Sequence record: MT995927.1
Direction: 5' to 3' (one strand)
Length of the DNA: 64,000 nucleotides
Within the stretch, counting starts at the first letter, position 1. Every line of letters starts with the position of its first letter. The notes below the pieces were generated by a model. The model saw nothing but the letters and a program-made list of their open reading frames with translations, did not search any database and was not told the DNA's origin. The position numbers and the translations under genes were made by a program. This document shows positions 11,901 through 39,479 of the stretch, one piece after another.

Positions 11901-12503
11901 ATGCAGCGCAATAATGACCCGCAGCAAGTAATCATGTCGATTGAGATGTACAATAGCCTACTGGCTATGGCTAATGATTCACCTCATTACACGACAAAAC
12001 TTATCCAACGTCACGTGCGAAAGATGAATCCTTTTTTACAACCTGCACATCTAAAGAATGTCAGAACTAAGGAAGCTATTCGGTCCCAACGTATTCGTGA
12101 AGCTCGGGCTTTCTTCGAAGCCAATCATAGAAAAATTCTGTACGCAAAGGTTGATATGGGTAACTGTAAAAAAGGAGATGATCCGGTTTACTTCCCATGC
12201 ATATCTGAACGTATTGCCAAGAATAGACAACTAATCCAAGTTCGTCATGCCAATGAAGTTAGTTATGGACGGTGCATCCGGTTGGTAGAGGCTAAATATC
12301 TCACAACCATTATTCCTGATGGATATATCCAAGGAACTGGGCCGTATAAAAAATATCTTGTTAAAGAGAATGGTCCTTACGATATCCGTGAACAAGAAGA
12401 AAAACGTAAACAAGCTTTTTCGAGTGAGATAGCTAAGAAGTTTGAGTTCAAACATGATTCTTACGATATGGATAATCTCAAAAAGAATTATTATACACAA
12501 TGA
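11901..12503 (+). CDS. hypothetical protein, paralogue of 37729..38112
   Basis: Shared N-terminal ~70 aa pattern. Confidence 0.75.
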   Translation: MQRNNDPQQVIMSIEMYNSLLAMANDSPHYTTKLIQRHVRKMNPFLQPAHLKNVRTKEAIRSQRIREARAFFEANHRKILYAKVDMGNCKKGDDPVYFPCISERIAKNRQLIQVRHANEVSYGRCIRLVEAKYLTTIIPDGYIQGTGPYKKYLVKENGPYDIREQEEKRKQAFSSEIAKKFEFKHDSYDMDNLKKNYYTQ

Positions 12504-22430: not shown

Positions 22431-22799
22431 GTGATGCAATGTTTAACACACGTAATGAAGTTAGTGGCCGTATTAAGTACGTTGTTATACGTATCAAACC
22501 CACTAGCTGCATCGTTGGTAGTTGACGAGAATTACTGTAATGGTGTTGCACTTATAGCACATGCCACAGCAGAAGCACGTCAGCGTAAAACACCCATTTT
22601 ACAATGGGAAGAAAACCTACGATCCCTAAAAGGGTACGGCGTGAAGAACAAAGATAACGTTCTTTACAATGTTCTCCCAGCAGCAATTAAAGAGGTGCAC
22701 GTTGTGTATTCACGTAGACAAAGCCCACGTGATGCATACGTTACATCATTTAAAACCTGTATGGATAACAACTACGGTAAAGCTGTGGTTGTAAAATAA
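22431..22799 (+). CDS. exported two-Cys helical protein (distant member of the 36-39 kb family)
   Basis: Signal peptide ending NPLAA, ENYC near the N-end, KTC near the C-end. Confidence 0.65.
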   Translation: MMQCLTHVMKLVAVLSTLLYVSNPLAASLVVDENYCNGVALIAHATAEARQRKTPILQWEENLRSLKGYGVKNKDNVLYNVLPAAIKEVHVVYSRRQSPRDAYVTSFKTCMDNNYGKAVVVK

Positions 22800-22834: not shown

Positions 22835-23152
22835 ATGAGAATCTGTGGGTTGCAAATGTATAAAGTATTTGTTATATCAATGATAACACTAACGGCTATA
22901 TCAACATGTGTAACTTTCATTATTAATATAAAAAATCATTATATTCACTGGATGGGTGTTTATAAGGTTAGATATGTATTAGATAAAATGCCCAATGGCA
23001 TAAGTTATTTTTTCTATCAAAATGCTGTCCAAGACATTATAGATAAAGAATCATCTAAAATAACAAATCAACATATTTTTACATCTTTTATTTACGATAT
23101 CAACTCATTGATTATATTAAAATGTAATAATAGGGAAACAGCAAATGAATGA
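22835..23152 (+). CDS. single-TM protein, paralogue of 23145
   Basis: TM helix plus LDKMPNGISYFFY. Confidence 0.7.
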   Translation: MRICGLQMYKVFVISMITLTAISTCVTFIINIKNHYIHWMGVYKVRYVLDKMPNGISYFFYQNAVQDIIDKESSKITNQHIFTSFIYDINSLIILKCNNRETANE

Positions 23153-23435
23153 TATCATGACAGTAATTATAGGTATTTTGTTTCTGATTATAATGATGGC
23201 TTTAATTAACTGGGGTTATTATGCCATCAAACACACGATAAAGTGTAACAGGCTTTATAAAGAAGCACTATCAATTATTGACAATATGAGTGATGGTTTA
23301 TCTGAATACCAGTATACAGTAGCTATTGGACGTTTACGTAAAAAGGCATACTCTATCGACCATTTAACTGCTGTTAAAATGTTTGAAGCATTAGACTTAG
23401 TTATTAAAGATAAGTCAAGAAAGAAAAATAAATAA
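23145..23435 (+). CDS. single-TM protein, paralogue of 22835
   Basis: TM helix plus IDNMSDGLSEYQY. Confidence 0.75.
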   Translation: MNDIMTVIIGILFLIIMMALINWGYYAIKHTIKCNRLYKEALSIIDNMSDGLSEYQYTVAIGRLRKKAYSIDHLTAVKMFEALDLVIKDKSRKKNK

Positions 23436-24199: not shown

Positions 24200-25108
24200 A
24201 TGCTTAAGGTAAAATCATTACTCACTGGCCATATTCTTCGAGCTACCTATGATTGGTTTCTTGAAAATAACTTCAGAGATATTCTAATTGTAGCACATAC
24301 TCAATTAGTACCTGATTTATCTGAGGTAGCTCTAAAGCATGCGAAAGAAGATCACACTATCACTTTCAATATCCATCCACGCTGTGCAAAGAATTTTTAT
24401 ATCAGTGACGAATATATCTCTTTCAATGTAACAGTAAATGGAGTTGGGGTCAGTATTAAACTTCCTCTTTATGCAGTATTGGGTGTAGTTACACCTATTG
24501 ATGATAATTCTAACGCATTCTTTGAAATGCCGCTAGTAGATAGATATCTCAATGCAGATACTATTCGTGCAACATTAGAAGGAACTGTTAATAATGTAGT
24601 TGACAAAAACCCAGTATTAACTACTGTAGGTAATGTCACTGAGGTTAATTTTAAAAATAAAGCCGATACCACTAATGGTAAGTTAGTTGTAAGGAATACA
24701 TCTGAGAATGAGCATGATCAGATGATTGAAAACGCCATTAACAGAGTAACTGAATTTAGTAATCCAGAATTAGATGCACATATTAGAGTAGCGGTAACTG
24801 CAATTAAACAGAATGCACCAGAATTAATTATGGATTGGTGTGAACGGGTTATTAATTGTACACGTAATGAAAACTATCAGGATAACATCAATGTACTTAT
24901 GATGGAACTCCTCAGTTACCCTATTTCAAATGTGATTAGTGAATCAACTGTTGACTCAGGTGATGATACATCTAATTCATTTGACAATGATGTAAATAAG
25001 ATGGTTGAGGATTTCAATAATTCTTCCAATTCGCAGGTCATTATTAATAAACCTTCTCGTCCTACTGGTCCACCAAAACTCACTGTTATTAAAGGTGGTA
25101 AGAAATGA
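24200..25108 (+). CDS. sspB: SspB-like ClpXP adaptor with an inserted central domain
   Basis: LRATYDW, ITFNIHP, ISFN...LPLYAVLG match the SspB core; C-terminus PKLTVIKGGKK resembles the ClpX-binding LRVVK tail. Confidence 0.8.
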   Translation: MLKVKSLLTGHILRATYDWFLENNFRDILIVAHTQLVPDLSEVALKHAKEDHTITFNIHPRCAKNFYISDEYISFNVTVNGVGVSIKLPLYAVLGVVTPIDDNSNAFFEMPLVDRYLNADTIRATLEGTVNNVVDKNPVLTTVGNVTEVNFKNKADTTNGKLVVRNTSENEHDQMIENAINRVTEFSNPELDAHIRVAVTAIKQNAPELIMDWCERVINCTRNENYQDNINVLMMELLSYPISNVISESTVDSGDDTSNSFDNDVNKMVEDFNNSSNSQVIINKPSRPTGPPKLTVIKGGKK

Positions 25109-25362
25109 ATGTAACTTTAGCAATTCTTTTTAGTAGTATCAGTATCGCTGGTTATCAAGCCAATGGTGCATCGCAGTCAACCACTGAGTTCTCTGACATG
25201 ACTACTTGTTTTAGCGCGATTGAGCGTATTCAAAAACTAGCTAAAGCAAGTGCTATTCGTAATAATGTAGAGACTGTAAAAATCAGCGATGGTGTTCTAT
25301 TACGTTATTTTTCTTCTAGTACCAGTAAAGTAGAACATACTCTAATCTGTGTAAATAAATAG
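25105..25362 (+). CDS. small exported protein with two Cys
   Basis: Hydrophobic N-terminus, AxG/A cleavage-like site. Confidence 0.65.
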   Translation: MNVTLAILFSSISIAGYQANGASQSTTEFSDMTTCFSAIERIQKLAKASAIRNNVETVKISDGVLLRYFSSSTSKVEHTLICVNK

Positions 25363-25370
25363 GTACGGAT

Positions 25371-26078
25371 ATGTCTGAGAAAATGTATTTATCTTTTTCT
25401 GGAATTGGACACAATGACGTAATCAAACAAGATCTTAATGGATTCATTCCAATGGATGTATCAACTATTGATACTGAAGTGGCTGATCGATTATTTTATA
25501 CTCCATTCAATAGTTCTGAACCAGATACGTCATTACCTAATGTTGCTAATGTGGTATTCAAGGTATTGCCTATCCATATCGAGGATAACACTATCTGTGT
25601 TTTAGATAGTTGTTCTAGTACCGAATACTCATTGAATGACCTAGTTGATACCAGTGTCTCATCATTAGAAACATATGGACCATTATTAGATTTACGTAGT
25701 AGTGATCCAATTGAGACATATGCTAATCAGGCAGTGTATACTTGGTTAAATAAGAATATCTGTAATATCGAATTTGAAGTACATGGCGGGTTGCAAGTGC
25801 AACTAACTGCTGACCAAGTACGTTCCAATGTTAATGCATTTGTAGCAGGTATTGATCTTGACATCGACGATAAATTGATGGTATATGTGGTGATTAAAAT
25901 CAATGATCGTTTATACGATGCTTGGTCTAGTCAACATGTGGTGGAACCATTAACAATGTATCATGTGCAAGGTGGCCATGAACCTATTGTCTATAGTGAA
26001 ACCCATATTGAAAATAGCCTATTGCGATATGCCAAAGAGAAAGGTTGGGCTGAAATTTTGACTCGTATTGGTCTGTAA
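25371..26078 (+). CDS. hypothetical protein
   Basis: 235 aa, AGGT SD. Confidence 0.8.
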   Translation: MSEKMYLSFSGIGHNDVIKQDLNGFIPMDVSTIDTEVADRLFYTPFNSSEPDTSLPNVANVVFKVLPIHIEDNTICVLDSCSSTEYSLNDLVDTSVSSLETYGPLLDLRSSDPIETYANQAVYTWLNKNICNIEFEVHGGLQVQLTADQVRSNVNAFVAGIDLDIDDKLMVYVVIKINDRLYDAWSSQHVVEPLTMYHVQGGHEPIVYSETHIENSLLRYAKEKGWAEILTRIGL

Positions 26079-26142
26079 TAAAAATACTTTTAATAGATTA
26101 ATATTATAGGCAAAATACTGGCCGATTGGTTAGTTGCGCTTA

Positions 26143-26162
26143 GGGAGTCCTTCGGGACTCCC
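26143..26162 (+). terminator. UUCG hairpin upstream of the thyA operon (terminator or 5' stabiliser)
   Basis: GGGAGTCC-TTCG-GGACTCCC with no T-run. Confidence 0.55.
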
Positions 26163-26183
26163 GTATACCGTCTAGGAGGTTTT

Positions 26184-26477
26184 ATGTATACAGTTACACT
26201 TGAACAAGTAGGACACCGTATACAGTCTAGTTTAAGTGCTTTTGTAATTAGACCGTTTGAAAATACCATTACGCATAATGATACGTCTTATTACTTGATC
26301 ATGGGTAAAGATGATTTCGATAACATGCACATGGAATGGCGAGATGTAGCTGTAGTTGATAGTCAAGCCGTTATAGTTGCTACATACACTCCATCGAAAA
26401 ACTCATTTAATCTTGTAAAAAATGAATTAGGTATTCCAGTTAATATCAAATACAAACGGATAGAGGTTGATCTATGA
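26184..26477 (+). CDS. hypothetical protein
   Basis: 97 aa, AGGAGG SD. Confidence 0.8.
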   Translation: MYTVTLEQVGHRIQSSLSAFVIRPFENTITHNDTSYYLIMGKDDFDNMHMEWRDVAVVDSQAVIVATYTPSKNSFNLVKNELGIPVNIKYKRIEVDL

Positions 26478-26504
26478 TTACCAGTAAGGTTAGAGGAATG
26501 AAGT

Positions 26505-26705
26505 ATGGATCGTCTTGATGAAAGAATCGCATTCAGTGTAAAGTCGTACAAAATTTTCAATGCTCTCACCCATGGTCGAGTTCGGGCATTGATTATTAAC
26601 TTTAAAGATGGTAAGGGTACGATCGTATCTATTAGTGATGATCGCCGCCATGATAAACATCTCTGGTTCAACTGTGGACTAGTAGACAATCCGAGGATCA
26701 AGTAA
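26505..26705 (+). CDS. small hypothetical protein
   Basis: 66 aa, GAGGA SD, TAATG coupling to thyA. Confidence 0.7.
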   Translation: MDRLDERIAFSVKSYKIFNALTHGRVRALIINFKDGKGTIVSISDDRRHDKHLWFNCGLVDNPRIK

Positions 26706-27775
26706 TGGAACAATATCTTAATTCAATTCGTTTAGTTAAAGAACACGGTGTGCATAAAGGTGACCGTACTGGTACTGGTACTCAGAGCATGTTTGGTCAA
26801 CAAGAACGTTATAGTTTACGTAACAACGTTCTACCCGTAGTAACTACTAAGAAAATTCATCTTCCATCTGTTATCCATGAATTGTTCTGGATGCTTTCTG
26901 GTGATACTCGTGTAGATTATTTAATTGAAAATGGCGTACGCATTTGGAATGAATGGGTTAAACCAAATACCGCGATGTATCGTGAGTTAAATCAAGAAGA
27001 GCTTGACTCAGCTATTCTAAAGAAAGTTGGTGGTCCATTTGCTCTTTATTTCCATTCTCTAGATGATGACGTAATCATTTATACTAGAGATGATTTCGAG
27101 GTGTCTTTAAATAATGATGAGAAAGTTAGCTTTTGGAATCAATATCCAACCATTAATATCGAAGCTACCCATGTAGTTGGTGTTAACGCCGACCGCTGGA
27201 AGTTAGTATCTACTCTAGATTTCGATGAAAGTGTGACACCAGAACTAATTAAATATGAATATGGTAAACGACTATATAAATTGCTATTTGGTGTTAAGCC
27301 TCTAAAACTCATCGGGGGTGATCTAGGTGCCGTTTACGGTAAGACATGGCGTGATCTCGAAGATACCCGTGTGATCCCAAAACACGAGTGGGCTGTTTAC
27401 GAGGCACGTGGCTTTGACTTCGTAGTTGATATTCCAGGTACTTACATGGAGAATGATCGGTGTGTTGTAACACGTCGTATTGATCAAATTCAAGACGTGA
27501 TTGATCAACTTAAGACAAACCCTGATTCCCGTCGAATCATCGTTTGTGCGTGGTCACCGCAACTCGTTGATGAACAGGCGCTCCCACCATGTCATAGCTT
27601 CTTTCAGTTCTGGACTCGTGAACTGACGCTAGAAGAACGGTATGACTGGGTCAAACTTAACGACACTGAAGCTCAACGTATTTTCCTTGAAGGTGCGCAA
27701 CCGGAAACTGATCACGCACTGTGGGATAAACTTGGTGTTCCTAAACGTGCATTGAGCTGCCAGCTCTACCAGCGT
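26705..27775 (+). CDS. thyA: thymidylate synthase, exon 1
   Basis: DRTGTGT, PVVTTKK, IWNEW, GDLGAVYG, DQIQ, SRRIIVCAW, ALPPCH (catalytic Cys), LSCQLYQR. Confidence 0.95.
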
Positions 27776-28865
27776 TAAATACTAGCGCCTTCTAGGAGCA
27801 ATCCTAGTCGAATAACCTATCTAAACGGGGAAACTCTCTATGAGACAATCCCGTGCTAAATTGACTACGGTCATAAATGCCTAACGACTATCGAAACCAC
27901 TCTGAGAAGAGGAAGGGAGTAGAGTAGGACCAAGTGGTCCGAAAAGGTAGGGGTCTCTTTTTAAGAGATCGTGATATAGTCTGTCCTGCATGGAGACATG
28001 CAGCGGTTTACTTAATGACTCCGCCAGATAAGGAGGGTGTTATTAATGACGTAGCTTATGTGTATTGCCTATTCACCAAAGAAGGAAAGGTATATGTCGG
28101 AAGTGCGCGAGATTTAGTTAAGCGCGTTCAACGACATTTCAGAGACCTTAGTAATTCCAAGCACCATAACTACCCATTACAACAAGAATACGATAACGGT
28201 GAAAGATTCTCGTTAAAGTACTATCGTTGTGAAAGTCGGGAATCAGCATTTACACTCGAACAGATGTGGATAACCAAGCATGAAGAAGAAGGTAACCTTC
28301 TTAATATTGGTAGACACTCCAAGGGTGGTGATAACTTAACCAGGCATAACCTCAAAGAACAAATCATCGAGAAGCGGAGTGATACAATACGTATCAGACT
28401 TGATGAGATTGGAGCCGAGGCTCGTCAGGAAAAGTATGGTCGACCAGGTGAGCAGAATGGGATGTATGGTCGTACTCACACAGAAGAAGTTAAGGTAGCT
28501 CTATCCGAGTTACACACGGGTAACACTTACCGTCTTGGCATTAAAGCTAGTGATGAGACAAGAGCCAGGATGTCGGAGATAGCTTCTCAGAGAACAGGCG
28601 AACGTAATCCATTCTACGGTAAAACACATTCCGAAGAAACCAGAAAAAAGTTGGCGGATAACAAACGCGGTATAAAGCCAACTAACTCAAACAAACTTGA
28701 AGTGGACGGTGTTGTTTATTTATCCCAGGCCGATGCAGCTAAGGCTCTCGGAGTATCACAGGGTACAATAACATACCGAATTAACAGCAAGAATCCAAAG
28801 TATTCTGGTTATAAAGTCATTTAAGTAAACGGCTCAGGATTAACGACCCTGGGTGAACATAAGAG
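27776..28865 (+). mobile_element. group I intron (IA2, T4 td-like), 1090 nt
   Basis: Exon ends in U, intron ends in G; P1 GCGU|UA pairs with UAGCGC; td-like core CTATCTAAACGGGGAA..GACAATCCCGTGCTAAAT, AATGCCTAACGACTATC, GATATAGTCTG..CTGCATGG.GACATGCAGC, GATTAACGACC..TGAACATAAG; splicing restores YQR/SVDTFLG. Confidence 0.95.
28015..28824 (+). CDS. intron-encoded GIY-YIG homing endonuclease (I-TevI/I-BmoI-like)
   Basis: YVY..KVYVGSA.D..KR..RH, catalytic E and N positions, two NUMOD3 repeats (GMYGRTHTEE, PFYGKTHSEE), C-terminal HTH; start codon uncertain. Confidence 0.9.
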   Translation: MTPPDKEGVINDVAYVYCLFTKEGKVYVGSARDLVKRVQRHFRDLSNSKHHNYPLQQEYDNGERFSLKYYRCESRESAFTLEQMWITKHEEEGNLLNIGRHSKGGDNLTRHNLKEQIIEKRSDTIRIRLDEIGAEARQEKYGRPGEQNGMYGRTHTEEVKVALSELHTGNTYRLGIKASDETRARMSEIASQRTGERNPFYGKTHSEETRKKLADNKRGIKPTNSNKLEVDGVVYLSQADAAKALGVSQGTITYRINSKNPKYSGYKVI

Positions 28866-29168
28866 AGCGTCGATACTTTCTTAGGAAAACCCTTTAACAT
28901 CACGTTCTATAGTCTGCTTACTCATATGCTGGCTAACCAAATGAATATGATTGCTGAAGAGTTTATCTGGGCTGGTGGTGATGTACATATTTACTCTAAC
29001 CACCAAGAACAAACTGATCTTCAATTAACTCGTGAGCCAAAGGTTCTACCTATCATCCGCTTTAAAGAAGAAGCTATTGGTAAAGATATTCGGGAAATTG
29101 GTGTAGATGATTTTGTTATCGAGAACTATGAATATCATCCACACATTGCCGGTAAAGTTGCTGTTTAA
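28866..29168 (+). CDS. thyA: thymidylate synthase, exon 2
   Basis: SVDTFLGKPFNITFYSLL...GDVHIYSNH...HPHIAGKVAV; spliced product 457 aa. Confidence 0.95.
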   Translation, partial: SVDTFLGKPFNITFYSLLTHMLANQMNMIAEEFIWAGGDVHIYSNHQEQTDLQLTREPKVLPIIRFKEEAIGKDIREIGVDDFVIENYEYHPHIAGKVAV

Positions 29169-29175
29169 CATAAAC

Positions 29176-29200
29176 GCCTCCCTTCGGGGAGGCTTTATTT
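29176..29200 (+). terminator. intrinsic terminator
   Basis: GCCTCCC-TTCG-GGGAGGC-TTT. Confidence 0.85.
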
Positions 29201-29252
29201 TCCCTTGGTGGAATAATGAACTTCTTGCTTTTTGAAAAAAGGTAGGTGAATA

Positions 29253-30086
29253 ATGGATCCACGTCATCCGGTTAGTGGCGAGATGCGTTCAGTCATTGAT
29301 ACAGAACTAACTAGAATTGAACAGAAATATGGTGTAAAGATTATTTATGCCTGTGAGTCCGGTAGTCGTGGTTGGGGTTTCGCTTCTACTAATAGTGATT
29401 ATGATGTTCGCTTTATTTATGTTAACCATCCGAGACATTACGTTCGTGTGGATAATGAAGCACGTGATACTATCGAAGAGATGGTATCTAAAGAACTAGA
29501 CCTTGCTGGTTGGAACATCACTAAGACTCTTCAACTTGCTTACAAGTCTAACCCCACTCTCTTGGAATGGCTAAACTCCCCAATCGTTTACCGTAAGGTT
29601 GATTGTGACTACAAGTTAATCCGTGATGCTGCACTAAAGCACTTCATCCCTGAATCGAGTTACATGCATTATATCTCGATGGCCAAACAAAACAAAATGC
29701 GTTGGTTGTCAGATGAGAAGGTCCGGATGAAGAAGTACTTCTATTCTCTTCGTCCTCTGTTGGCTGCAATGTGGGTCCGTGAAAGTCCGGAACATCCACC
29801 GATGGTATTCCATGACCTACTGCCTCTTCTGTCAGATCCTATCCTTTATAAACGTATCCAAGAACTGGTTAATGATAAGGTTGGGTCTATTGAACAGGAT
29901 CTGATAGATCGTTGCCCTATATTAGATCAGTTCATCGATTTTCAATTGAGTCGTGAGAAACCAGACTTCGGTAAATACGAACGTCCGGACATCTATACAC
30001 TTACCGATCTAGCCTGGCATTTTGTTGACCAATACAAGCTCGACACATTCGCGAAACTACAGGATATCGAACGAAGAAAATATTAG
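29253..30086 (+). CDS. RlaP/YcgL-type Pol-beta nucleotidyltransferase
   Basis: ESGSRGWGFASTNSDYDVRFIY, DLAGW, SNPTLLEWLNSP, KKYFYSLRPLLA. Confidence 0.9.
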   Translation: MDPRHPVSGEMRSVIDTELTRIEQKYGVKIIYACESGSRGWGFASTNSDYDVRFIYVNHPRHYVRVDNEARDTIEEMVSKELDLAGWNITKTLQLAYKSNPTLLEWLNSPIVYRKVDCDYKLIRDAALKHFIPESSYMHYISMAKQNKMRWLSDEKVRMKKYFYSLRPLLAAMWVRESPEHPPMVFHDLLPLLSDPILYKRIQELVNDKVGSIEQDLIDRCPILDQFIDFQLSREKPDFGKYERPDIYTLTDLAWHFVDQYKLDTFAKLQDIERRKY

Positions 30087-30135
30087 TCAATAAAGAAAAA
30101 AGTTTAATACCATCTTATTAAAAGGAAAATATTTT

Positions 30136-30636
30136 ATGCTATTTAAAGATGAACTATGCATCGAAAATATCTTAGTAAAAGAAAAACTATATCTAGTTAG
30201 AAATATTGGTAGGAATCGTGAGGTATATCCTAATCCAGAAGTAATGTATAAGGATATTAAGAAGTTCACTAAAACGTATGGTGTGATTCCAATGCAGTTC
30301 TTAGGGCCACTACTTCATGAAATCGTTGAACGAGAAGATTTCGCCTTAAGAGAAAAAGAAGCACAGAAATTCATTGATAATAATCCTTATACTTTAGTTG
30401 AACCTATCGGTAATATTCATCTTGACTACGTTATTCGTAATTATATTATCCCAACTACTACTGATCCAGATTGTAATAAATTCACTATTAATCTTTATAA
30501 GTATAAAGAATTTTTAGAAGCGGTTACTAATAGGTTAAACATGCCATCTTTTTGGGCTGGCTGGATGCCTAATCGTAATTACTTACTGGCGATGCGTGAA
30601 CGTCTACTTACCATCCAGGATATTGTGGAAAATTAA
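30136..30636 (+). CDS. hypothetical protein
   Basis: 166 aa, AAGGA SD. Confidence 0.8.
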   Translation: MLFKDELCIENILVKEKLYLVRNIGRNREVYPNPEVMYKDIKKFTKTYGVIPMQFLGPLLHEIVEREDFALREKEAQKFIDNNPYTLVEPIGNIHLDYVIRNYIIPTTTDPDCNKFTINLYKYKEFLEAVTNRLNMPSFWAGWMPNRNYLLAMRERLLTIQDIVEN

Positions 30637-30735
30637 TGAAGTTTAGAATGTTAAAAGTTAATGTATTCAATTTACTCTACTACATACTTTACCCTACTCC
30701 ATATTGGGGTAGGGGTATTAAGGTGGAGTATAAAT

Positions 30736-31029
30736 ATGTCAAGCAACAAACTAACTGCACAACTTAATCGTCATCACAATACTCGTATAGTTAATTATTA
30801 TGTTTCACTAGCCGCGAGTCTTTATAATGACACTAATCCTTCAGCAAAGGCTAAAGGTAAATGGCGTAAACATAATCCGTTTAACTGCGGTAGGTCTCGT
30901 TGTATGCTATGTGGTAATCCGCGTAAACATTGGAATAGGATTACTCTTAATGAATTAAAAATAAATATTTCATTAAAAGAGCAACTCAATGATCTTTATG
31001 TAGATTATGCTACGCTGACTGAGGATTAA
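30736..31029 (+). CDS. conserved phage protein with CxxxxCxxC Zn motif
   Basis: KHNPFNCGRSRCMLCGNPRK; start moved to the ATG after GGAG. Confidence 0.75.
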   Translation: MSSNKLTAQLNRHHNTRIVNYYVSLAASLYNDTNPSAKAKGKWRKHNPFNCGRSRCMLCGNPRKHWNRITLNELKINISLKEQLNDLYVDYATLTED

Positions 31030-35747: not shown

Positions 35748-35770
35748 ACCCTCCCTTCGGGGAGGGTTTT
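35748..35770 (+). terminator. intrinsic terminator
   Basis: ACCCTCCC-TTCG-GGGAGGGT-TTT. Confidence 0.85.
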
Positions 35771-35806
35771 ATTTATCTTTTTTTGTATTTAAACTATTTA
35801 AAAAGC

Positions 35807-35814
35807 TATATTAC
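35807..35814 (+). promoter_or_regulatory. early promoter
   Basis: TATATTAC followed by AAATATGA. Confidence 0.8.
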
Positions 35815-35847
35815 AAATATGAATTTAATAACCAAGAGGGCAATACA

Positions 35848-36111
35848 ATGACTGAACGTTTGAAATCCGTATGGTGCGCTTGCAGCTTACTGCGTGAACG
35901 CTGGAGACACATCCAAGACATTGCTGTCGGGGATGAACATCATGTCATAGTAAAAAACGATATGCTGATGGTGTTTCGTGGTCAAGTACCGGTAGGTAGC
36001 ATGTACCGGGGTGACAGTGACCCACTCATCTACGAGGGTGGTGCACTGGAAGAATTTACTAAAGTTGTATTGGATTTAGAATTCAATACTCGTGGTGAAA
36101 CCAATAGTTAA
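35848..36111 (+). CDS. hypothetical early protein
   Basis: 87 aa, GAGG SD. Confidence 0.75.
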   Translation: MTERLKSVWCACSLLRERWRHIQDIAVGDEHHVIVKNDMLMVFRGQVPVGSMYRGDSDPLIYEGGALEEFTKVVLDLEFNTRGETNS

Positions 36112-36137
36112 TAAAATTAATTTTGAGGTAATTCATT

Positions 36138-36545
36138 ATGAAATATGTAATTGTATTTATGTTGTCTATTGTAACTATCACTGCTAACTCGGCTGTCATG
36201 TACACTAATCGTGATTCATGCATCGAGTTTGTAAAACAGGCAGATGAATTGTTTGTAAAAGGTGCATCTGTAACTGAAGTGCAAATGAAGACTTATGAAA
36301 GGATTCATTATATCCTTAATAACACTAAAGATCTAAAGACCAACCAGTCTAAAGTTGAAGAACTCACTGGTCTATTTTACCTATGGTCTAAGGTAGATAA
36401 AATGGCAATTGAGGCAAGTTTGCCACGTGCAACAAATGCTGCTAAAGTCTATAAGACCACTCCTGAGAAATTCATCATTGATGGTTATTTCCAGCGTTGT
36501 GTAGCGGCAGGTGCGTTTGAAGCAAAACCACTTACTCTAAAATAA
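36138..36545 (+). CDS. exported two-Cys helical protein
   Basis: Signal peptide ..TANS/A; RDSC...QRC. Confidence 0.8.
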   Translation: MKYVIVFMLSIVTITANSAVMYTNRDSCIEFVKQADELFVKGASVTEVQMKTYERIHYILNNTKDLKTNQSKVEELTGLFYLWSKVDKMAIEASLPRATNAAKVYKTTPEKFIIDGYFQRCVAAGAFEAKPLTLK

Positions 36546-36557
36546 TGGAGGTACAAC

Positions 36558-36917
36558 ATGCTTAAGAATTGGCTATTATTCCTTTTCCTGCCAATCCTGT
36601 CCATTGCATGTCAGCCTGCCCACGCTGTAGAAGTGGGTATTACTAAGAAATCATGTAATGTGGCAGTAAATCTTTCACAAAAAGCAACTGAGCTTTATGA
36701 TAAGAACCTATCCCAATTTGAGATAATGATGCAGTTAGATATGATCTCTCGTAAGGATATGGATGACTTAGAGTTCTATGCAGGTACCGTATATGCTAAA
36801 TTAAACTTAGTTGATATTCGCGTAAATAAACGAAAAGGATTTACCAATGGAGCTATTCTAGATAGGCTAGCTGAAAACTGTGTTGAAGCAATTGGTACTA
36901 AATTTAACTTGGAGTAG
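36558..36917 (+). CDS. exported two-Cys helical protein
   Basis: Signal peptide ..PAHA; KKSC...ENCVEAIGTKF. Confidence 0.8.
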   Translation: MLKNWLLFLFLPILSIACQPAHAVEVGITKKSCNVAVNLSQKATELYDKNLSQFEIMMQLDMISRKDMDDLEFYAGTVYAKLNLVDIRVNKRKGFTNGAILDRLAENCVEAIGTKFNLE

Positions 36918-36920
36918 AAT

Positions 36921-37715
36921 ATGGTTAGTATTTATATTGTCATTATACTCATGGCTATGCTAGCTGCATTGACATGTGGTAATTTGGTAGATAGCTGGGT
37001 AAGGCCAGCTATTCTAAAGTGGTTAAATGATGATGTCGCTATTCATTTCACCAATGCTACCTGGATGGTTGGGGGGATCCCTAATAGTGTTCCAATGCAA
37101 CTAGGTAAAGCTGTTTGGTTACCCAAATACGTGGGTGACGGAATACGTCTTTATATCACGGCTGATGAAATAAAATTTGGATGGAATGGTAAAGAAAAAG
37201 ATGCTTTAGCACGAGCCATTGTTGAAGTTATCTTTATTGGTAAAAATCCAAATAGTAAACTTCTTGAAGTAAGTATTAAACCTATTTGGTTACACCCTTC
37301 TATCCAAAAAGAAAGTTTCTATTTAATGTTTGATTGGGAAAAGCTTTATACAAAAAATGAAGAGATGCGTATTTGTTGGAAGACAATACGTCACACTTTT
37401 TTCTATGGATTCCTAGGTTTGCTATTTGGCGGTAGTGCCAATGCAGATAACCTTGTATTAACTGAACGTGGATGTGATCAATATGAAGCAATGGTGAGAA
37501 CTATTGCATCTAAAGCTTATATTGGATTAGATCCAGTTATGGGTAGGGAATTCATTATTAATGATCCTGATATGTTAAATGCCCGTGAGAAAGCACAACG
37601 TAATACCCGTATCATTATCGATATGGTGGAAACTGGACAAGAACCCAAAGACATTGCATTATGGATGAATACTCAATGTAAACAAGAAGCAGTGTCAAAT
37701 TTAATCAAACAGTGA
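36921..37715 (+). CDS. TM protein fused to an internal signal peptide and a two-Cys domain
   Basis: N-terminal TM; in-frame ATG at 37365, ..GGSANA/DNLVLTERGC...TQC. Confidence 0.75.
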   Translation: MVSIYIVIILMAMLAALTCGNLVDSWVRPAILKWLNDDVAIHFTNATWMVGGIPNSVPMQLGKAVWLPKYVGDGIRLYITADEIKFGWNGKEKDALARAIVEVIFIGKNPNSKLLEVSIKPIWLHPSIQKESFYLMFDWEKLYTKNEEMRICWKTIRHTFFYGFLGLLFGGSANADNLVLTERGCDQYEAMVRTIASKAYIGLDPVMGREFIINDPDMLNAREKAQRNTRIIIDMVETGQEPKDIALWMNTQCKQEAVSNLIKQ

Positions 37716-37728
37716 AAAAGGCATAGAT

Positions 37729-38112
37729 ATGAAAAGAAATTTTGAAGATGATCACGTGGTAATGGCAGTGGAAGTATATGAGAAACTGAAAGAAGCTGCT
37801 GCTTATTCATTACACTCTTCTGAAATTAGTAAGATCGAACGACATATGCGTAAGTTTAATCGTGTTCAACGCGATAAACATATTGAAAATATGCATATGG
37901 AAATGCTTGAGAAACGCGAGGCTATTAGAAAAGCAAAATCTTTCTTTTCTCAAAATGCCGGTAAAATTGGTTGCGTAGTAGATAGGCTTGTCAAAGTATG
38001 TGAAGTGTATAAAATGGATAAGTCTATGGTGGTTGTTGAGTTTCTCCAACATAAATCTAAAATTAAAGTTCCAGTAAATCCTGAAAAAATTACTATTCTT
38101 ACCATTAAATAA
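37729..38112 (+). CDS. hypothetical protein, paralogue of 11901
   Basis: VMAVEVYEKL..IERHMRK..IRKAKSFF. Confidence 0.8.
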   Translation: MKRNFEDDHVVMAVEVYEKLKEAAAYSLHSSEISKIERHMRKFNRVQRDKHIENMHMEMLEKREAIRKAKSFFSQNAGKIGCVVDRLVKVCEVYKMDKSMVVVEFLQHKSKIKVPVNPEKITILTIK

Positions 38113-38129
38113 ATGAAGAAGGATTTAAA

Positions 38130-38585
38130 ATGAAAAATGTAATTGCAGCAGCTTTCGCTGGTCTCATTGCCATTACCGGTATCATGTTCAATACCGCAAT
38201 GGCTGAAATCAAGATTGGTAAAAAAGATGCTCAACTCACTGTGCAGTCGTGTGCAATGGTTGAAACCATTACTAAACAAGCTGTATTTCGAATGAGTGAA
38301 GGTCATAGCGCAGATGAAGTTGGTGTGCTTATGCTCAACAACTCTGCTAAACTCAAAGATGAGTTGGATACCAATAATTGGATTGCGTTAACATTCGTAT
38401 TCAATAGTCTTAATAAAATCAATAATGACCTTAACAGTAAAGAGATCCATGATTATATCCGTAGTCAAGGTTACAATGTGACTACTCCTAATCTGGCAGC
38501 TTTTATCAGCGGGTATTATGGCAATTACTGCATGAAGCATATTGGTGAGAAATTCACTCACATGGTAATTGTTGAACTCATTTAA
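38130..38585 (+). CDS. exported two-Cys helical protein
   Basis: Signal peptide ..TAMA; VQSC...NYCMKHIGEKF. Confidence 0.8.
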   Translation: MKNVIAAAFAGLIAITGIMFNTAMAEIKIGKKDAQLTVQSCAMVETITKQAVFRMSEGHSADEVGVLMLNNSAKLKDELDTNNWIALTFVFNSLNKINNDLNSKEIHDYIRSQGYNVTTPNLAAFISGYYGNYCMKHIGEKFTHMVIVELI

Positions 38586-38617
38586 TTCATATCGAATACT
38601 TTCAAAAGGAAAATAGG

Positions 38618-38995
38618 ATGAAATACGTCTTCTCGCTCATTATCACTATGGTAGCAATGTCGGTTAATGCACAACCCGTAACCGTGTCATCTTGCTACGT
38701 GCTGCACAGCTTGGCAAAGAATATGGTTCAATTCTACACTAATGGCGGTGAGCCATTGGAGATGTATGCAATACTGCAAGATGAACTATCCATTGCCATA
38801 GATAAAAACCAGAGTGATAAGGCACTCGCTATTAATATCGCATTGGATAATGTCGATGTAATATACCAAAATCTCACTGATCCCGCACTTAAGCTTTTGG
38901 CAAAGAGCGAGGGAAGTGATCTTGGTGAGATGCTGACTGAAAAACTCAGTAATGGGTGTTTCAATATAGTCGGCGAGGAGTTGTATGATAACTAG
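38618..38995 (+). CDS. exported two-Cys helical protein
   Basis: Signal peptide ..SVNA; VSSC...NGCFNIVGEEL. Confidence 0.8.
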   Translation: MKYVFSLIITMVAMSVNAQPVTVSSCYVLHSLAKNMVQFYTNGGEPLEMYAILQDELSIAIDKNQSDKALAINIALDNVDVIYQNLTDPALKLLAKSEGSDLGEMLTEKLSNGCFNIVGEELYDN

Positions 38996-39224
38996 AATCA
39001 TCCTAATTGTTGCATGGGTATGGGTAATCTCTCTTATGGGAATGATTACGTATGTTCTTTATGATACGTATCAATTTCGTAAGAAATTAGAAATGCCTGT
39101 TGTAGAATGGGAAGATAAGGCGAAGGACACTCCTGTTAAGAAGTGTCCAGATGAAGTATTATTCGCTGAAGACCCAAAGGATGGCAAACTCAAAATGGGA
39201 TGCCCTGAGAGTTATAAGAAATAA
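38985..39224 (+). CDS. single-TM protein with a C-terminal Cys pair
   Basis: TM helix; KKCP...MGCP. Confidence 0.7.
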   Translation: MITRIILIVAWVWVISLMGMITYVLYDTYQFRKKLEMPVVEWEDKAKDTPVKKCPDEVLFAEDPKDGKLKMGCPESYKK

Positions 39225-39226
39225 TT

Positions 39227-39250
39227 AGAGGACCTTCGGGTCCTCTTTTT
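39227..39250 (+). terminator. intrinsic terminator
   Basis: AGAGGACC-TTCG-GGTCCTCT-TTTT. Confidence 0.85.
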
Positions 39251-39423
39251 AACCGACTGGACGGTTAAAACTAGGTGGGATAAATTAAACTATTTGAGGA
39301 AATCTAATGCAACTTAGTAATGAACTTTTCTATGTGGGTATGGTAGCTGTATCAATGTCAATCGGTATGCTATTTAGCTATATTTATCACACTCATAAGA
39401 AAAAATATAAATAAAGTCATAAA

Positions 39424-39448
39424 CCCTCTCCCAAAGGAGAGGGCTTTT
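39424..39448 (+). terminator. intrinsic terminator
   Basis: CCCTCTCC-CAAA-GGAGAGGG. Confidence 0.75.
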
Positions 39449-39449
39449 A

Positions 39450-39479
39450 CATTAAATTTTTTTTGAAATCTATATTACA
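39450..39479 (+). promoter_or_regulatory. early promoter cassette, family B
   Basis: 30-bp identity with 23472..23501. Confidence 0.85.

Follow-up and report, generated by a model that had tools for sequence, protein, structure and literature searches.

Spackle (Sp, gp61.3) of phage T4 is a small, helical and non-enzymatic periplasmic protein that carries a signal peptide, is made early, excludes superinfecting phages and is dispensable in the laboratory. Llp of phage T5, which is also made early, and Cor of phages phi80 and N15 are outer-membrane lipoproteins that block the receptor. The saposin-like proteins (SAPLIPs: saposins A-D, NK-lysin and Na-SLP-1) are eukaryotic lipid binders of ~80-95 residues, folded as a bundle of four to five helices in which a disulphide ties the first helix to the last. 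Here we describe a group of small proteins that bears some likeness to each of these, encoded in a stretch of 64,000 nucleotides from sequence record MT995927.1 (the window). Five of the genes lie in an array at positions 36,138 to 38,995 and the sixth lies apart, at 22431. Over positions 35800-39300 the DNA shows 100% identity to phages T2P, U1B, U5 and phi9_PA9 and to phiKZ, the Pseudomonas aeruginosa jumbo phage, in which the array genes are gp247, gp248, gp249, gp251 and gp252 and the outlier is gp229; their existing annotation consists of a gene number only. The six proteins very probably form one exported helical family. To this family taken together with a role in superinfection exclusion we assign a probability of about 0.4.

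The likeness to Spackle is a functional analogy only, and Spackle is a single gene whereas here there is an array. With Llp and Cor the gp248-type proteins share the small size and a putative lipobox cysteine followed by Q/T-P, and with Llp also the early synthesis, but no similarity to them was found in the libraries searched and the family fold is predicted to be all-helical. The SAPLIPs agree with the family in length, in the predicted number of helices and in the position of the putative disulphide; they hold, however, three disulphides from six conserved cysteines, against two cysteines and one putative disulphide in the family, and the strands predicted at the ends of the family fold are additional.

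Export was judged by rules only: an n-region with Lys or Arg, an uncharged hydrophobic core and a small-x-small (AXA-type) cleavage site. All six proteins present these features, and the mature part of each contains exactly two cysteines, the first 8-16 residues past the site and the second 68-93 residues further on (Table 1). An earlier, sequence-only reading of the window had listed these open reading frames (ORFs) with signal-peptide-like N-termini and two mature cysteines, and by our rules all are present, the export segment of gp249 being internal. The spacing of 70-100 residues that it gave for the cysteines holds for five of the proteins and not for the C-terminal domain of gp249 (gp249C), where it is 68, and the three C-terminal motifs that it had singled out, CVEAIGTKF, CMKHIGEKF and CFNIVGEEL, are exact. 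When the architecture was applied as a filter to the 696 six-frame ORFs of the whole ~280-kb phiKZ genome, six ORFs passed, five of them from that list and the sixth gp230, beside gp229; none came from the ~216 kb outside the window. Five of the seven pattern-positive genes fall within one run of six genes, for which simulation gave P ~1e-4. Since the filter retains so few ORFs, none of them outside the window, and the clustering is this improbable, the architecture is not a product of chance. The sixth ORF, gp230, was discarded as a member, since, although it passes the two-cysteine filter, it has the look of a membrane anchor. In 18 proteins from seven phages, export features accompany two invariant cysteines. 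We infer from the sequences that these proteins are exported and their signals cleaved, and the two cysteines, placed in the models so as to connect the first and last helices, would form a disulphide. No catalytic motif was found in the family proteins. Their mature net charge ranges from -10 to +5, and their surfaces are therefore very different.

The sequences had been described as diverged almost beyond recognition, which is fair: in pairwise phmmer comparisons among 216 ORFs the best link was that of gp251 and gp252, reciprocal best matches at E ~0.01 and too weak alone. Profiles reached further. Diverged orthologues of gp248 are present in phiPA3 (gp303, 39%), Phabio, PS119XW, Psa21 and 201phi2-1, and a profile of these orthologues, with signal peptides removed, found gp251 (2e-4), gp252 (2e-3) and Psa21 gp333 (4e-3) among 344 ORFs; in the reverse search a gp251-type profile matched the gp248 orthologues at 1e-5 to 1e-2. 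Profile comparison thus establishes, at the level of sequence, the homology of gp248, gp251 and gp252. In an alignment of nine core sequences from five phages the invariant positions are both cysteines and a glycine five residues after the second (C-x4-G). Against a hidden Markov model (HMM) of this core, gp247 was the best non-member (E 0.04), with a score reached by 1 of 2000 shuffles, and hhalign, which gave it 1%, aligned a short segment that puts its first cysteine on the first cysteine of the family. By its sequence gp247 is a probable member. The score of gp249C was reached by 30 of 2000 shuffles, a marginal result, and that of PS119XW gp302 by 149 of 2000, which is at chance. PHROGs holds the six proteins in six clusters, 27482 (gp247), 15284 (gp248), 22383 (gp249), 22400 (gp251), 26535 (gp252) and 16193 (gp229), all of 'unknown function'; a weak match of gp251 to the cluster of gp248 (E 0.0026) is the sole contact among them. 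No matches were obtained in Pfam, NCBIfam, PADLOC or the PDB sequence profiles.

Three further ORFs resemble the members in part. PS119XW gp302 (L005:5803-6252), the third gene of the array of that phage, has a signal peptide and the two-cysteine architecture. Psa21 gp334 (L004:6244-6852), which follows the array of Psa21, has two cysteines in its C-terminal half (mature spacing 70) and no clear export signal. In the window, an ORF of 85 residues (25105-25362, + strand) has a signal-like N-terminus lacking Lys or Arg in the n-region, with Cys35 and Cys82 near its ends; considered as a seventh member, it gave no HMM signal (1056 of 2000 shuffles).

The fold was predicted with AlphaFold2 for mature gp248 from an alignment of 8 sequences, and the model is confident, with a predicted local distance difference test (pLDDT) of 87 and a predicted template modelling score (pTM) of 0.77. 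In it a short N-terminal strand leads into five helices (7-25, 30-42, 48-59, 61-69 and 74-88), after which a C-terminal strand (92-94) takes in the K-F of the motif. Of the two cysteines, Cys10 sits where helix 1 begins and Cys85 close to where helix 5 ends. In BFVD the model matched gp248 orthologues at E 2e-6 to 5e-4. It also matched A0A5C1K8Y4 of PS119XW (121 residues; query-normalized template modelling score, TMq, 0.78; probability 0.99), A0A494W8Q1 (151 residues, gp251 by length; TMq 0.74) and A0A494WC04 (264 residues, gp249 by length; TMq 0.71, root mean square deviation 1.8 Å over 85 columns), and weakly I7DAI5 of PA7 (135 residues, gp247 by length; TMq 0.39). A0A5C1K8Y4 was found to be 58% identical to gp229 in the BFVD search and is therefore a gp229 orthologue. 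The gp229 model repeats the order and the lengths of the elements of the gp248 model and, when used as a query, places the Psa21 and phiPA3 orthologues of gp248 third and fourth (probabilities 0.85 and 0.77); in the reciprocal searches with the two models, each other's orthologues stand at ranks 3, 4 and 7. A cysteine spacing of 73-75 is common to the gp229-type and gp248-type proteins. It is likely, as far as the models go, that gp249C and gp229 share the gp248 fold as very distant members. The paralogous family of the sequence-only reading is therefore secured by profiles for gp248, gp251 and gp252 and supported by shuffles for gp247, while gp249C and gp229 enter it on fold matches and not on sequence; the fold comparison that it had called for finds agreement among the gp248 and gp229 models and the 264- and 151-residue BFVD entries, and only a weak match with the gp247 entry.

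Among PDB structures the best fold matches were saposin-fold proteins, namely saposin A, saposin C, Na-SLP-1 and the swaposin insert of prophytepsin, with template modelling (TM) scores of 0.5-0.71 (TMq 0.5-0.61, target-normalized TMt up to 0.71), probability up to 0.72 and E ~1. The SapB domain of Pfam had no match in the family. As judged from the models, the saposin resemblance is a weak topological likeness and not membership. Weak analogues occur in BFVD among unrelated phages as well, under the annotations 'Lipoprotein' and 'Exported phage protein', and these models give a hint of a broader structural class among small exported proteins of phages.

The saposin-like topology had been missed by the sequence-only reading, as had two features that set individual members apart, the putative lipobox of the gp248-type proteins and the two-segment membrane topology of gp249. 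In gp248 the lipobox-like L-S-I-A-C is followed by Q-P-A-H-A, and in gp248-type proteins a cysteine in lipobox-like context precedes Q/T-P-x-x-A. The strict lipobox pattern occurs in the proteins of phiPA3, Phabio, PS119XW and 201phi2-1, and those of phiKZ and of L006, a relative ~80% identical, fit by eye the looser PROSITE-type pattern. UniRef names gp248 'Lipoprotein'. The AXA site of gp248, five residues past the lipobox cysteine, offers an alternative cleavage. No lipobox was found in gp247, gp251, gp252 or gp229. The gp248-type members are, by these sequence features, probably lipid-anchored lipoproteins.

The order of elements in gp249 is an N-terminal hydrophobic segment, a domain of ~125 residues without known relatives, then the second hydrophobic segment, of export type (residues 149-175, positions 37365-37445) and the two-cysteine domain. 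A translation start inside the gene, at Met149, was considered and rejected, since GAAGAG abuts the ATG with no spacer. As Met149 lacks a spaced ribosome-binding site, gp249 is better read as a single membrane protein with two membrane segments. The charges around the second hydrophobic segment, MRICWKTIRH before it and acidic residues after it, would make the middle domain cytoplasmic and the family domain external.

A profile of three paralogues, run exhaustively with HMMER against 1.84 billion representatives, returned seven proteins, six of which belong to phiKZ-like phages and the remaining one of which is a spurious ankyrin-repeat kinase; no cellular homologue of the family was found in that search. 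Word-indexed homologue searches reached close relatives only, and a search of viral contigs with the homologue P0012 gave no match. On this sequence evidence the family is confined to the phiKZ-like phages of Pseudomonas (chimalliviruses). Each Pseudomonas chimallivirus lineage examined has genes of the gp248 and gp229 types, and gp251-type genes are found also in Psa21 (gp333) and PS119XW (gp301); gp247, gp249 and gp252 are restricted to phiKZ and one metagenomic relative, the matches of gp247 coming from the phiKZ species and one 72% relative. The orthologues of gp229 in PS119XW, PA1C, Phabio, RVTF4 and 201phi2-1 are 39-55% identical to it and have a cysteine spacing of 74 in all cases. A survey of copy number in relatives, suggested by the sequence-only reading, gave 1-3 adjacent copies in Pseudomonas chimalliviruses: one in phiPA3, Phabio and 201phi2-1, two in Psa21 and three in PS119XW. 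Fragments mostly 86-100% identical to gp247 or gp248 were also encountered in NCBI contigs of 232-718 bp labelled Klebsiella pneumoniae (P0003-P0006, P0015, P0020); these are probably reads of phiKZ-type phages within those assemblies.

The ratio of non-synonymous to synonymous substitution (dN/dS) against L006 is 0.03-0.16 for all members, like that of the neighbouring genes, the values being rough as dS is saturated. The cysteines, the signal peptides, the lipobox of gp248 and the internal segment of gp249 are kept in L006. The sequences are thus those of genes under purifying selection, and diversifying selection is ruled out within the roughness of these ratios. With each member under purifying selection, the copies diverged long ago, and each is constrained today.

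The array had been assigned to one unit behind an early promoter at 35807, and the flanking hairpins and the motif fit that assignment. The early promoter of the phiKZ virion RNA polymerase consists of an extended -10 element and an upstream T-rich element (PMC8244752; PMC7598289), and the motif before gp246.1 matches in sequence the published description of an AT-rich extended -10 with its upstream T-rich element (PMC8244752). The extended motif is found at eight other intergenic sites on the + strand of the window, so that nine copies end in TATATTAC (7968, 23493, 32304, 32736, 35807, 39471, 42156, 53512 and 62852), several of them directly 3' of terminator hairpins; four more exact copies of TATATTAC lack the extended context (1251 and 48242, and on the - strand 7465 and 38858). 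No terminator-like site was detected on the + strand between the motif at 35807 and 39424. Given that the first + strand terminator after the promoter is at 39424-39443 and that the motif recurs at 39471, the transcription unit, as read from the DNA, spans gp246.1 to gp253.1. None of its genes is broken. The array is interrupted by gp250 and flanked by gp246.1 and gp253. Regarding expression, in phage Churi, which is nearly identical, the homologue of gp248 was detected by proteomics at 15 min post-infection (PMC11849849). Phage with a transposon inserted in orf252 is viable, and the array falls within orf184-304, a largely non-essential region (bioRxiv 10.1101/2025.11.23.690004). The 'gp247', 'gp248' and 'gp249' of PMC10643120 and PMC10299810 are genes of other phages and were set aside.

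We propose the following model. Early in infection, the Sec pathway would export small phage-specific proteins, each of which would fold outside the cytoplasm into five helices between an N-terminal strand and a C-terminal one that pairs with it, with a single disulphide between the beginning of helix 1 and the end of helix 5. The members would be non-enzymatic binding modules, each old paralogue binding a different target in the envelope. Copies of the gp248 type would be anchored by lipid, gp249 would bear the module on a membrane protein, and the remaining members would be soluble in the periplasm. The infected cell would in this way be shielded at its envelope, by blocking of the receptor or of the incoming lytic activity, as T4 Spackle, T5 Llp and phi80 Cor do. 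By analogy with these proteins, superinfection exclusion or protection from incoming lytic activity may be put forward as the most likely purpose, tentatively and at less than even odds.

Several results weigh against this model, either in its family part or in its exclusion part. As regards the family, gp229 is at chance against the core HMM in the shuffle test, hhalign run without secondary structure gives 2% or less for gp247, gp249C, gp229 and PS119XW gp302, and neither gp249C nor gp229 has a significant sequence link to the core. The gp248 model draws on an alignment of 8 rows only, the gp229 model is a single-sequence one with pLDDT 66, and A0A494WC04 and A0A494W8Q1 are identified as gp249 and gp251 by length alone. 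Lipidation would not be universal among gp248-type proteins, as the lipobox is absent or non-canonical in the homologue P0012, which does not have the cysteine, and in Psa21 gp331. As regards exclusion, the 50 listed PDB fold matches do not include Spackle, no PHROG annotated for exclusion was matched and PADLOC returned none, while purifying selection argues against a fast arms race. The sequence-only reading had gone further and suggested a diversified effector or immunity repertoire, which is not supported by the dN/dS values or by the searches, in which no known exclusion, immunity, inhibitor or effector protein was matched (Pfam, PHROGs, NCBIfam, PADLOC, PDB sequences and the listed PDB folds). 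It was right that no function has been described, none being found in the libraries or the literature searched.

That purifying selection suits conserved host targets better than fast-evolving rival phages agrees with another possibility, that the proteins modulate periplasmic enzymes or sensors of the host, such as peptidoglycan hydrolases, proteases or the MucA/MucB/AlgW stress pathway, keeping the envelope intact and the stress response restrained through the long infection. Early expression and periplasmic targeting fit this function, and gp249, joining the module to a probable cytoplasmic domain, has a sensor-like arrangement. AlgU-type promoters are strongly enriched among the infection-specific host transcription starts during phiKZ infection, in which the AlgU regulon is induced (PMC8244752), although this link to AlgU is circumstantial. 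The proteins show, on the other hand, no similarity to known families of lysozyme or protease inhibitors, and most other Pseudomonas phages, which face the same host pathways, lack the family. We consider such modulation doubtful.

More doubtful still is that the proteins are saposin-like lipid binders, whose bundle would open or present a hydrophobic face to envelope lipids and so remodel or stabilize the membranes of the swollen cell, with phospholipid, lipid A or the acyl chains of lipoproteins as candidate ligands. The saposin-fold proteins form a coherent cluster among the best PDB matches, at the TM scores given above, saposins likewise tie their first and last helices by a disulphide, and of the BFVD analogues in other phages, two bear a lipoprotein annotation. 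Nevertheless, all saposin matches have E ~1 and a TM score of 0.5 is common among small helical bundles; the three conserved saposin disulphides contrast with the single one proposed here, Pfam gives no SapB match, and the terminal strand pair is foreign to saposins. A bolder form of the same idea, improbable on the models at hand, would make the family the first phage saposin-fold lipid-binding module, exported early to seize or reshape envelope lipids, with gp249 sensing or signalling the state of the envelope through its cytoplasmic domain, for example when a second phage attacks.

Finally, that there is no single family but a true trio of gp248, gp251 and gp252 accompanied by unrelated exported proteins, their fold matches reflecting the limited fold space of small bundles, would agree with the hhalign values of 2% or less, with the chance score of gp229 and with the poor match of the 135-residue BFVD model of gp247, but is the least probable alternative given an architecture found nowhere else in the 280-kb genome, the cysteine spacing and the order and lengths of secondary structure shared by the gp229 and gp248 types, the reciprocal BFVD ranks and the 1 in 2000 shuffles of gp247.

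Whatever its role, the exported helical family is new, narrowly distributed and of a known general kind, that of small exported phage accessory proteins. It joins six clusters of 'unknown' function into one family, a union not recorded in PHROGs, and phiKZ would devote one early unit, and one gene apart from it, to six related exported proteins that share a single predicted fold. At least one or two members are kept in every Pseudomonas chimallivirus examined, which points to a conserved function directed at the envelope. Studies of phiKZ-like phages have dealt mostly with cytoplasmic matters (the phage nucleus and its import, the spindle, the phage's polymerases), and the words periplasm, signal peptide, receptor and envelope are absent from a 2025 review of the field. 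The six small proteins offer a concrete set for structural and localization work; as phages of the phiKZ type (OMKO1, KTN4 and others) are used or considered for therapy, effects on the cell surface and on co-infection in cocktails are of practical interest.

Table 1. Genes of the exported two-cysteine family and associated features in the window. Cleavage sites (marked by a slash) and mature numbering follow the rule-based predictions.
Feature	Position	Strand	Description	Predicted site	First mature Cys	Cys-Cys spacing	Remark
gp229	22431..22799	+	122 aa; predicted signal peptide; mature Cys9 and Cys83	LAA/S	9	74	predicted array-type fold, no detectable sequence similarity
Hairpin	35748..35767	+	terminator-like, closing the gp246 unit				8-bp stem, 6 GC pairs, then T-run
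Early-promoter-type motif of phiKZ	35779..35814	+	T-rich tract, gtatttaaa, TATATTAC at 35807-35814				motif recurrence and published description
gp246.1	35848..36111	+	87 aa; opens the unit; lacks an export signal				outside the family
gp247	36138..36545	+	135 aa; predicted signal peptide; mature Cys9 and Cys102; ends C-V-A-A-G	NSA/V	9	93	probable member
gp248	36558..36917	+	119 aa; predicted signal peptide; mature Cys10 and Cys85; ends CVEAIGTKF	AHA/V	10	75	widely conserved core member
gp249	36921..37715	+	264 aa; two hydrophobic segments; two-Cys family-type domain at 37446-37715	ANA/D, internal, residue 175	10	68	
gp250	37729..38112	+	127 aa; non-family gene within the array; no export signal				paralogue of window 11901-12503
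gp251	38130..38585	+	151 aa; mature Cys16 and Cys109; ends CMKHIGEKF; helical insertion	AMA/E	16	93	core member
gp252	38618..38995	+	125 aa; mature Cys8 and Cys96; ends CFNIVGEEL; net charge -10	VNA/Q	8	88	core member
gp253	38985..39224	+	79 aa; N-terminal membrane segment; C-x18-C tail				co-transcribed, outside the family
Hairpin	39424..39443	+	terminator-like, ending the unit; next early motif at 39471-39478				hairpin search and motif

For gp229, the ATG at 22434 is the likelier start. Adjoining this gene are gp230 (22835-23152, + strand) and gp231 (23145-23435, + strand), both small and with N-terminal membrane segments; gp230 begins with MRIC, as does the internal export segment of gp249.

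Two companions of the array evolve at opposite rates. The fastest-evolving gene of the unit is gp250 (60% identity to L006, dN/dS 0.23), which matches the ORF at 11901-12503 (+ strand) with a phmmer E of 2e-10. The most conserved is gp253, which overlaps the end of gp252 and is 96% identical to its L006 counterpart, where the other genes compared reach 60-91%; gp253 may partner the exported proteins.

Elsewhere in the window, at ~26700-30100 (+ strand), the annotated thymidylate synthase is split into two parts by a homing-endonuclease ORF, in DNA of raised GC content (0.40-0.42), and bases 25000-31000 are covered to at least 80% in only 12 of 57 related records. The variable stretch at ~26700-30100 probably accounts for the ~548 bp by which the window exceeds the phiKZ reference.

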